Assembly: GCF_902459465.1 (NCBI RefSeq)
Contig: NC_047066.1
Span: 18,414,001-18,478,000 of the forward strand
Reading direction: 5' to 3'
Source: Asterias rubens
Lineage: Eukaryota
DNA length: 64,000 nucleotides
A program made the translations under genes and the position numbers. The notes below the pieces were generated by a model that saw only the letters and a list, made by a program, of their open reading frames with translations, had not been told where the DNA came from and ran no database searches. The first letter of the stretch is position 1. Every line of letters starts with the position of its first letter. This document shows, piece by piece, positions 12,148 to 15,300 of this stretch.

Positions 12148-12371
12148 CTATATGTACGGGCGAATTTTCATTTCGCTCTTCACTATACGTGAGCCACTCC
12201 AAGATGCCATTGCCATGCTTCCATCAGTAAACTTACTGTTTAGGTTACCTTGGAAACATGAAAGTTCATCTCTAAACCACCAACCTCCACCATTCGTGCA
12301 GTTACCGAGACCATTGTTGTCGATGTCGTTTGTGAAGAAAGTTTGATTATTTGCCCATTCAAGAACATCAC
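12148..12371 (-). CDS. Copy 1 exon 7, C-terminal (P-subdomain) part of the FReD
   Basis: GDVL...[13 protein letters not shown]...NC...GGWWF...C...NLN...EMKIRP, ending in TAG at 12150-12148. Confidence 0.9.
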
Positions 12372-15300
12372 CTGTAATGAAACAAAACAAATAAATAAAG
12401 GCTTATTAAAAATTAGCCGACATTTAAACATTTGTTTATAGATATAAATGTTGCACACAACAAAACATATTTCCATCAAATACAATTTAAATACGCATAA
12501 CAATAAAAAGTTTAAAATTACCTTTGCAACCAATGAGTTCCATGCGCATTGATATCCAAAAATGAAATGTAATTGGTTTTATGCGAATATATCGTGCTTG
12601 GATCGGCTGGTCAAACATGCTGGTCACTGCCGTGTTTTGGTCTGTATTGCCAGGGAAAGTCTGCAACAGAAGAAACAACAAACAATACATCGACTGTATT
12701 ATAGAGGTGCAAACTTGGACAATTTGAAGAATCTGTTTAGAATATATACATGCCTAAAGAAAAGGGTGTTCCCGTACCTTGTGTACGCCCGAAGATGTCT
12801 GAAGGACATAATGCCATGATGAACCCTGTACGTCACTGTATTGCACCTGGTAAGATTCCACTCTTGCGGACCAAACATTCAAGGGGTCAGTTAATCCTTG
12901 TAAAATGACACCTTCGACTTGAAGCCGTTCTCCCAAGTCTACCTGAAACCATTCCAACCGGGGGACAAGCGTGGTTTTCGCACACCATCCGCCGACAACT
13001 CTGCCAATCCCCGGCTTGTTCAAACGCCCATTACTCGGCAAACAGTTACCGGGAGCGTTTTCGCGTAAGTCGAAACTACCAGATGCTGTGATTCTATCAT
13101 CGGGTATACTGCCATCTTCCATTCCAAGGGGTTGACCACAGACATTTTTCACTAATTGAGATAAAGCATATGGCTATTGTTAATGCTCTTCATCTGCAGT
13201 AAGCATAACACGCTTCAAAAATCATGAACTCCTTTTTAAAACCATTAGTATTTAATAAAGGGTTTGAAAAACCCCACACACGGCACATTACTTGATAACG
13301 GTGGTGCACGAAAAAGAAGTAAGCTAAATGACTTACAGGCAATCTAATATTTCATCATAATATAACACATTTGTTATGTGTACAAAAAAAGGTTTGCATG
13401 TTTGACCTTTTTTCGACATATAAGAGGCAGCTCTGCATACCATTTTTGTGATCAAGTCAGTAGGCAGTATCCAAGTACATACAAGTCAATAGGTTTCTTA
13501 CCATGTGGGGGTGATCCAGAATCCCCGACACTTAGCATATAGTCGTCCCCTATTACTCTAAACAGTGACTTAATCAGAGAGCCCTCCACTCCGAGCTCGT
13601 TTACGAGGTCCACACGCACCGTCCATTGGACCCCTCCGTCCCTAGCAGTTAAACGGCGGAGTATTTCATTGCCAAGCCAAAACTCGCCCGTCAGAGTCCC
13701 GAAGCCGTGTTTGTATTCATTCCAATTGCGATGGAAATTAACAGACCCATCGTAACGCCTCTGAAACACCTGCAATAATATCATAAACAATATCATATCG
13801 TATTAGAATGATGTAATTATTAAATTGATATACTAATTGGTGTTTCATAATATTAACAGTGACAGTTATTGCATTGTTCTTTGTAATCAAGAAAATAATA
13901 TGAACATTAAATCCACAAGTTTTGCCGTTCCAGGCATCAAGAACAATGAAAGCAAAATAGGGCTGTTGCCTCAAAATGAAACTTACAATCCAACTTCCGT
14001 TATCAGATGTCATATCGCAGTAAACTTCCAAGCCGCTGGGATACTGCTGTGGGTGTATCTTGAACACACCACTCGTCGAGTAACCGCCATTCAAGACGTC
14101 CATACAATCGGACAAATTATCATCTGAGTACGAAAAACAAATATATATTTCCACTATGAATGAATGTAAGATATTAAATGCTAGCTACATTTTAGCCATT
14201 ATGTCGTGCACAACGTCATCTAAGTTGGCTTGTCCGACTGTAAAAACTTTTGAATCTATTTCATAACATTCGGTTAGGAAGGTTTGAGTTGAAGGGATTT
14301 CACATTAATCCGATCCATCCAAATGGAACTCATAAGATATAGGCCTATACTAATAAATAACGAACTTTTAAAACAATAATATCTTCAACTTGTACTTCAA
14401 TTCCAAGTTTGTTTGAATGTTCATTCCTCACTATTATTGTCACATTGGAATTATTTGCAAATTCTCACCATGACACTTGAAGTAATCATGTATGATCTCT
14501 GGGTCGTCCGTGAAGATGGGATGGTCCGTGTAGTAGGGTCGAAACCCCCTCTTTGGAGTGACCATGGTCACGCCCCCTGGTCTGATCTCTGAGCATGCGC
14601 AAAGATCCCGGTTCTCTAGAGGTAGAACCCATCGGAGACTACCTCGCTGGTCTGGATCAGGTTCTTGGCTAAAAATGCAGACTTTTGCCGCGACTCCCGC
14701 ATACCATAAACTCACTTCAAATAAAACAAACCCATATATACACAACAAACTAAAACGGACGGCAAAAACACTGGGAGGGAAACAGCGAATAGGAAAATGG
14801 TTCTCTCCTCGCCTTCTTAGTCCTCAAAGCACAGTTATGTAAACGAATAATACAAATAGTTTAAAAATAACAATATTACTAAACCCTGAAAATAATAAAT
14901 ACAACAATGTATATTCTAAACCTTGTCTTAACCTAACCCCTTGACGCGTTCGAAATCTTTTACAGAACCTAAACACTTGTTTTTACAGTGTATGTTTACC
15001 GGGGTAAATTAAACAATTAAATTTGTCTTTAAACCGTAAACCATATGTCTACACTCTCCCTGCATAAAGGACCTAACAACAACATGACGTCTTATAATCT
15101 TTGTTTTATGGGATTAGTTGTTGCGTTGAATTGAATTGAATCCAAAGAAAGGAGCCTCAATAGCAAAAGATGTGATATTTTTAATGCTGAAACAACCCAT
15201 AACTTGTCGAGTATTTTTTAATAGATATGTCCCAACCCCCGAACAAATGCCACCTATCCCTTAAATTGTGTTTTTATACATGTTAAAGGTTTAATCTAAT

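Follow-up and report, generated by a model that had tools for sequence, protein, structure and literature searches.

Tandem Sea-Star Genes Predicted to Encode Secreted Proteins with a Discoidin Domain Nested in a Fibrinogen-Related Domain

Introduction

Among the main classes of pattern-recognition lectins in invertebrates are proteins with fibrinogen-related domains (FReDs); discoidin domains bind sugars, lipids, and collagen. In canonical FReDs, subdomain B runs straight into subdomain P, and the last strand of the chain returns to subdomain B. Known discoidin structures have both termini at the same end of the barrel, opposite the binding spikes; in the factor V/VIII C2 domains, a terminal Cys pair ties the N- and C-termini together. 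FReD and discoidin modules are normally adjacent where they share a protein, as the first-pass annotation of the locus described here had stated and as amphioxus, coral, and brittle-star proteins with the two side by side illustrate. Here, we analyze a 64,000-nucleotide (nt) stretch of the Asterias rubens genome (NC_047066.1, positions 18,414,001–18,478,000; the whole stretch is referred to as the window), which carries two tandem genes whose FReD has 171 residues of another fold, a discoidin, between subdomains B and P. Each of these genes probably encodes one secreted polypeptide, with the discoidin nested in the FReD via exon shuffling and a lectin-like role in recognition or adhesion. The novelty lies in the domain architecture, with a putative function, and not in a new kind of biological system.

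Gene Architecture and Domain Identity

Translation of the candidate exons, with the splice sites checked on the sequence, gave a seven-exon gene (paralog 1) on the minus strand at 15709–12148, with a coding sequence of 1434 nt (477 amino acids, aa), no internal stop codon, and GT-AG boundaries at every intron. Its parts are as follows:

Exon 1, 15664..15709, minus strand: ATG at 15709 and a GT donor; aa 1–15, most of the signal peptide; ends in phase 1
Exon 2, 14469..14714, minus strand: end of the signal peptide and an 82-aa four-Cys N-terminal domain (C28, C54, C56, C96)
Exon 3, 13987..14123, minus strand: FReD subdomain A; Fibrinogen_C positions 3–45; Cys104 and Cys133
Exon 4, 13502..13769, minus strand: FReD subdomain B; ends in ...SGSPPH plus one base, phase 1, right before the canonical GDS position
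Exon 5, 13151..12778, minus strand: first part of the discoidin cassette; a phase-0 intron precedes exon 6
Exon 6, 12660..12522, minus strand: second part of the discoidin cassette; exits in phase 1
Nested discoidin cassette, 12522..13151, minus strand: terminal Cys237 and Cys402; F5_F8_type_C positions 2–127 of 127
Exon 7, 12148..12371, minus strand: FReD P subdomain and final beta-strand; GDVLEW...MKIRPYI-stop; Cys428 and Cys442

After a signal peptide and the four-Cys N-terminal domain, the polypeptide runs through FReD subdomains A and B into one complete discoidin and then on to the P subdomain and last strand of the FReD; positions 12148–14123 cover everything from the first base of exon 3, at which the FReD starts, to the stop codon. 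The cassette of exons 5 and 6 measures 513 nt (171 codons), enters in phase 1, and leaves in phase 1, with an internal intron of phase 0, and the linkers flanking the discoidin are short (~4 residues on the N side, 1–2 on the C side). All 12 Cys residues can be paired within domains: four in the N-terminal domain, 104/133 in subdomain A, 237/402 and 269/289 in the discoidin, and 428/442 in subdomain P. By alignment, Cys104/Cys133 and Cys428/Cys442 occupy the canonical FReD disulfide columns (bonding is predicted), and Cys237 and Cys402 bracket the discoidin and are conserved in all relatives. N-glycosylation sequons are also present in the window protein.

At the curated Pfam cut-offs (22 bits for Fibrinogen_C, 28.2 bits for F5_F8_type_C), exon 3 matched Fibrinogen_C at positions 3–45 of 221 (38.1 bits) and exon 4 at positions 45–104 (66 bits), while exon 5 matched F5_F8_type_C at positions 2–82 of 127 (46.5 bits) and exon 6 at positions 85–127 (34.2 bits). 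The discoidin identity of exon 5 was confirmed by an ESM Atlas search, and exon 4 additionally matched ficolin-3 residues 54–135 among PDB sequences. Given that Pfam is silent on exon 7, the identity of the P subdomain rests on phmmer and on a custom profile. Using phmmer against PDB sequences, exon 7 aligned with residues 136–216 of 217 in ficolin-2, starting from the GDSL motif (E = 4e-5), followed by tenascin-R, ANGPTL6, and ficolin-3. The custom canonical FReD profile (223 positions, built from 18 canonical FReDs) matched the window protein in two halves, 10–106 (aa 100–200) and 129–221 (aa 392–474), with 141 bits for the whole; upon deletion of exons 5 and 6 in silico, it gave a single contiguous match at 10–221 (151 bits). 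Subdomains A, B, and P and the last strand of the FReD are all represented in the window protein, but the domain is interrupted, as 171 discoidin residues separate ...SGSPPH from GDVLEW.

The exon boundaries and phases proposed in the first-pass annotation, as well as its 171-codon discoidin in exons 5–6, were confirmed. Its placement of the discoidin inside the FReD, at the entry to the P subdomain, agrees with the custom profile, which breaks there in the window protein and in its relatives. The two half-matches around one full discoidin match that it anticipated were obtained with the custom FReD profile and Pfam F5_F8_type_C, and the signal peptide bears out its description of a secreted protein.

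Transcript Evidence

Four public runs were compared, as assembled contigs, with positions 12000–15800 of the window. The parts skipped by spliced contigs from X2 and X3 are precisely 12372–12521, 12661–12777, and 13152–13501, with ends reading CT..AC on the plus strand (GT..AG on the minus strand), and exons 4–5, 5–6, and 6–7 are therefore joined; the joining of exons 4–5 and 6–7, on which the nested arrangement had been predicated, is carried by both runs. The corresponding joints are 13151->13502 in X2 and X3, 12660->12778 in X3, and 12369->12520 (cut +2) in X2 and X3. A 645-nt contig of X3 spans exons 5-6-7, and a 272-nt contig spans the exon 4–5 joint with zero mismatches to the window. 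The three upstream introns are also skipped in contigs of X2:

Exon 1–2 joint of paralog 1, 14714->15664: spliced contig of X2
Exon 2–3 joint of paralog 1, 14123->14469: X2
Exon 3–4 joint of paralog 1, 13767->13985 (cut +2): X2

Since the contigs are spliced, we read the runs as RNA. The mature mRNA includes the discoidin cassette, and both tandem genes are expressed.

Insertion Site and Sea-Star Relatives

The FReD is interrupted where the Y.L.V strand region ends, ahead of the G in the GDS motif. For orientation, we take AGDAF in the human fibrinogen gamma chain, counted from the C-terminus, to be residues 286–290, a count that we assume to be correct from the Cys326–Cys339 pair and the D318/D320 calcium site, and AGDAF is presumably the border of the B and P subdomains published in the gamma-C crystal-structure literature. 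An insertion at this GDS/AGDAF border gives the chain order A, B, discoidin, P, last strand. The alignments support a nested discoidin placed directly ahead of the G in GDS, where the P subdomain opens.

We searched for relatives with exon 5 using HMMER and scanned the hits with the four parts of the window protein; one search covered the best 150 hits, and the others used a word index and a length window. In A. rubens, A. amurensis, and Patiria miniata, more than 20 RefSeq models with a split FReD were found, containing one, two, or four nested discoidins, so that the nested order sought in other echinoderm proteins is present in both Asterias and Patiria. These include:

A. rubens: XP_033627167 (P0154, 484 aa), XP_033627169 (P0151), XP_033640221 (P0156), and P0188
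A. amurensis: XP_071790385 (P0109), XP_071795614 (P0016), P0186, P0157, P0138, and P0152
Incomplete models: P0029 (Patiria), P0035, and P0153

The word-indexed searches added about a dozen A. amurensis genes and P. miniata P0208 (LOC119737907). In all relatives, the FReD is broken between custom-profile positions ~123–134 and 138–144, and in the family proteins Pfam divides Fibrinogen_C into two stretches, one on each side of the discoidins; the precomputed Pfam order at the Asterias locus is likewise Fibrinogen_C, F5_F8_type_C, Fibrinogen_C. The closest annotated relatives of the window proteins are asteroid proteins, and P0154 shares 47% identity with the window protein from end to end, across the N-terminal domain and each of the junctions. 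The single-discoidin subfamily of relatives carries the N-terminal domain as in the window proteins, while many relatives differ from the window proteins in having two or four nested discoidins and no N-terminal domain. Like the window genes, the genes of the relatives are arrayed in tandem.

Members of the family are named "lactadherin-like", "coagulation factor VIII-like", "fibrinogen-like protein 1", or "uncharacterized" in RefSeq. The first-pass annotation gave the architecture as not known to have been described, a statement that holds in part: we found no description of a discoidin nested in a FReD in the full-text literature searched, but the arrangement already occurs in the more than 20 automatically named RefSeq models. 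As far as searched, it is thus catalogued in RefSeq/UniRef under generic names and undescribed in the literature. These proteins are candidate immune or adhesion molecules of sea stars, mislabelled in public databases as lactadherin-like or factor VIII-like.

Two further features of the relatives were noted. In the Asterias subfamily with two or four discoidins (P0157, P0138, P0156, P0016, and relatives), FSIHHHT replaces the calcium motif FSTxDxDND, and 4–5 residues are inserted after the second P-domain Cys; these histidines might make up a different metal site. Separately, a 41-kb A. rubens locus (LR699096.1, 19455515–19496903) contains five P-subdomain exons, and several of the RefSeq models there look mis-split or merged. 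At this locus, a 484-aa model spans 21 kb and encloses a 417-aa gene, and a 229-aa model with Fibrinogen_C only directly precedes a 255-aa model of a discoidin plus a FReD tail, the two jointly resembling one nested gene.

Structure Prediction

AlphaFold modeling used the Asterias ortholog P0154. In MAFFT alignments A1 and A2, canonical P subdomains were aligned with the discoidin or with subdomain A; alignment A3 omitted the canonical P rows, and A4 placed the P rows correctly via anchor pieces but without canonical A/B rows. In the A3 model, the predicted local distance difference test (pLDDT) scores were 76–94 for FReD A/B (residues ~120–240), 80–94 for the discoidin (residues 246–400), and ~80 for the last strand (residues 470–484). 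Compared against the PDB, the modeled discoidin matched neuropilin-1 b1 (Z 23.5; 151 residues, 2.1 Å, TM 0.87), factor V C2 (Z 22.6), and discoidin I (Z 19.2). FGL1, H-ficolin, and ANGPTL3 superposed on residues 112–484 of the model over 158–178 residues (Z 15.7–15.8), which is more than the ~125–130 residues of the N-terminal half, and part of the C-terminal piece is therefore placed in the FReD position. The model thus gives partial support for the FReD halves reassembling. The expectation that they would do so with the discoidin as an appendage was borne out only in part: A/B, the discoidin, and the last strand are confidently predicted, but the P half of P0154 is modeled with low confidence.

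The Tandem Paralogs

The second gene of the window lies ~10.2 kb from paralog 1:

Paralog 2, 22372..26069, minus strand: exons 26069–26024, 25010–24765, 24422–24286, 23989–23722, 23378–23002, 22884–22746, and 22595–22372

Paralog 2 is intact (478 aa) and has one additional codon in the first discoidin loop, and the earlier view that both copies are intact therefore stands, with open frames of 477 and 478 aa. The paralogs share 94–97% DNA identity, introns included, differ at ~5% of synonymous sites, and have an overall ratio of nonsynonymous to synonymous substitution rates (dN/dS) of 0.35. Within the discoidins, five of the six substitutions and a one-codon indel fall at aa 257–264 (13059–13082 versus 23283–23309), and the rest of the 171-residue domain holds a single difference, F391G. 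This variable loop sits ~20–27 residues past the first discoidin Cys, and we take spike 1 of the factor VIII C2 domain to lie at a similar distance from its first Cys.

Putative Function and Alternative Readings

A secreted, lectin-like recognition or adhesion protein is the most likely product, because the encoded polypeptide combines a signal peptide, paired Cys residues, N-glycosylation sequons, and two lectin-type folds. As discoidin termini lie side by side, very short linkers would suffice for the nested domain to hang from the B/P hinge, and it would do so with the FReD fold unbroken. Given that the termini lie opposite the spikes, the ligand-binding spikes would be expected to project away from the FReD. 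The discoidin binding surface would then be presented on a FReD scaffold, possibly alongside a modified FReD pocket, and we infer that the two domains could provide dual recognition.

Several observations weigh against this reading. Exon 7 alone gave no Pfam match at E <= 1. The AlphaFold models are of the Asterias ortholog P0154 and not of the window's own protein; the P half of P0154 (residues 403–469) reached a pLDDT of only 30–40 in the A3 model, so that the reassembly of the FReD halves is not confident, and the A4 model failed for the whole FReD and was worse overall than A3. On the transcript side, the kind of run was only guessed by the tool, with the RNA nature deduced from the spliced contigs, and assembled contigs lose rare isoforms and give no tissue. 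Finally, the P half of the window proteins is ~9–10 residues shorter than in canonical FReDs, with a segment containing a conserved Tyr deleted, and Phe replaces His after the second P-domain Cys.

The changes in the P half also feed the alternative that survives best, in which the FReD is a scaffold only, its acetyl-group/Ca2+ pocket is dead, and the nested discoidin or discoidins do all of the recognition; we regard this as possible, though somewhat unlikely. In addition to the shortened P half and the Phe in place of His, the window proteins read DIDNN where canonical FReDs read DxDND, and their P half is the shortest in the nested family. Because the P half is shortened and the His and the Tyr segment are absent, the canonical FReD pocket may be inactive in the window proteins, the roles of these two residues in the pocket being assumed by us from the tachylectin-5A and ficolin structures. 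The replacement of FSTxDxDND by FSIHHHT in the multi-discoidin Asterias subfamily points the same way, as does the clustering of paralog differences in the first discoidin loop (aa 257–264). However, the P half remains constrained, with the Cys pair, GGWW, NLN, and MKIR kept from the window proteins to those of Asterias, the single-discoidin Asterias proteins retain FSTYDNDND, and the role of the His and Tyr is itself an assumption.

A more ambitious version of dual recognition would treat the nested genes as a lineage-specific, fast-diversifying sea-star recognition repertoire comparable to the snail FREPs, in which the number of discoidins and hypervariable spikes would set the specificity and the hinge would couple the discoidin to the P pocket in a composite or allosteric two-site receptor. 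We offer this as speculation and consider it improbable as it stands.

More doubtful still is a reading in which the discoidin exons are a regulated cassette, with the skipped form, an ordinary FReD protein, being the main product in some tissues. Skipping the cassette would keep the frame (513 nt, phase 1-1), and the result matches the canonical FReD profile contiguously with 151 bits. Yet the contigs of the four runs list no exon 4–7 joint (13502->12371), while all of the inclusion joints are listed, although assembled contigs could lack a rare skipped form; the RefSeq isoforms found for the Asterias orthologs differ by 12–16 residues and not by a discoidin; and the cassette is conserved between species at 42–56% identity and intact in every family member.

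That the locus is an artefact, i.e., a degenerate FReD gene in whose intron an unrelated discoidin gene or pseudo-exons happen to sit, linked solely by the first-pass gene model, could draw on the weak exon 7 (too weak for Pfam alone) and on an original gene model made without transcripts, but it is highly improbable, as spliced contigs join exons 4-5, 5-6, and 6-7 at exact GT..AG sites, the frame is open over 477 and 478 codons in two paralogs with a dN/dS of 0.35, and the same order recurs in more than 20 independent models from A. rubens, A. amurensis, and P. miniata. A pseudogene was also considered and rejected, on the spliced contigs, the intact paralog 2, and the dN/dS of 0.35.

Origin of the Nesting

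For the nested secreted protein favored here, a likely source of the insertion is visible in gene structure. The junction between the FReD and the discoidin is in phase 1 in Asterias P0151 and P0154, and the intron within the discoidin is in phase 0 in P0154 and P0035. P0016 has four two-exon discoidin units in succession, flanked by the B and P exons of the FReD. In A. amurensis, the gene P0159 encodes a canonical FReD with no interruption, and an intron in phase 1 splits it at aa 289/290, right before GDSM. As this canonical gene has its phase-1 intron at exactly the same site, exon shuffling is the most likely route by which the cassette came in.

The common site, phases, and junction motifs suggest a single origin of the insertion. 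In this scenario, one exon-shuffling event would have brought a frame-symmetric discoidin cassette into the pre-existing phase-1 intron in an ancestor common to Asterias and Patiria, the cassette would later have been duplicated in tandem inside the same intron, and the nested genes would then have been duplicated into tandem arrays, including the two genes in the window. The family would thereby offer a natural case of domain insertion by exon shuffling in which one can still see the donor cassette, the intron that received it, and the cassette duplications that followed. It also suggests that the FReD B/P hinge is a permissive site for the grafting of whole domains, which may be useful for protein engineering.

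N-Terminal Domain and Neighboring Sequences

The N-terminal domain (82 aa, spacing C-x25-C-x-C-x39-C) is encoded by exon 2 of both paralogs (14469–14714 and 24765–25010), had no match in Pfam or among PDB sequences, and is conserved in proteins of Asterias, Patiria, Acanthaster, and Amphiura. We also noted it in discoidin proteins without a FReD, Acanthaster P0009 and Amphiura P0069. It resembles an unnamed mobile module, perhaps for oligomerisation.

An isolated third copy of this exon is present in the window:

Third copy of exon 2 (N-terminal domain), 32412..32862, minus strand: interrupted by ~150 nt

This copy is 78–84% identical at the protein level, with its frame open, and the window has no FReD or discoidin exons after it; it is either what remains of a third gene copy or an initial coding exon belonging to another gene. 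Directly past the stop codon of paralog 1, at 12000–12126, lies a high-copy repeat whose read depth exceeds that of the gene several-thousandfold in each of the four runs, with numerous loose ends at 12002–12092, and a related piece of the repeat occurs at 31790–31871.

Comparison with Known Systems

The canonical FReD lectins, comprising the ficolins, tachylectin-5A, FIBCD1, the snail FREPs, and the angiopoietin-like and tenascin proteins, have the A/B/P fold elements in common with the window proteins. The shared motifs are VFQRR.DGS.NF, EFWLGN, GD.L..N...F.T.D.DN, C...GGWW...C, NLN, and the final MKIRP, and the best PDB sequence matches of the window exons are ficolin-1, -2, and -3. In contrast, the collagen-like region of the ficolins (no Pfam collagen match in the window protein) and the Ig domain of the FREPs are absent, and an unrelated four-Cys N-terminus is present instead.

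With the known discoidins (factor V/VIII C2, lactadherin C2, neuropilin b1, DDR1/2 DS, Dictyostelium discoidin I, and CBM32), the window domain shares a full-length match and the terminal Cys pair. Those discoidins are strung in series with EGF, CUB, and A domains or kinases, whereas the window discoidin lies inside another domain. The names "lactadherin-like" and "coagulation factor VIII-like" reflect the discoidin only, as EGF and A domains are absent; EGF domains, expected of lactadherin or EDIL3, had no match in the window protein, which has one discoidin flanked by FReD halves.

Side-by-side proteins are known from amphioxus, namely "ryncolin-1-like" P0222 of Branchiostoma belcheri and P0211 of B. 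lanceolatum, and from Paramuricea (octocoral; P0236) and Amphiura (brittle star; P0214). Like the window proteins, these combine the discoidin and FReD families in one secreted protein. Only as far as our searches reach, the nesting itself is limited to sea stars: unlike the window proteins, the side-by-side proteins carry an uninterrupted FReD after the discoidin or discoidins, which in P0222 is matched by Pfam from position 2 to 221 in one stretch.

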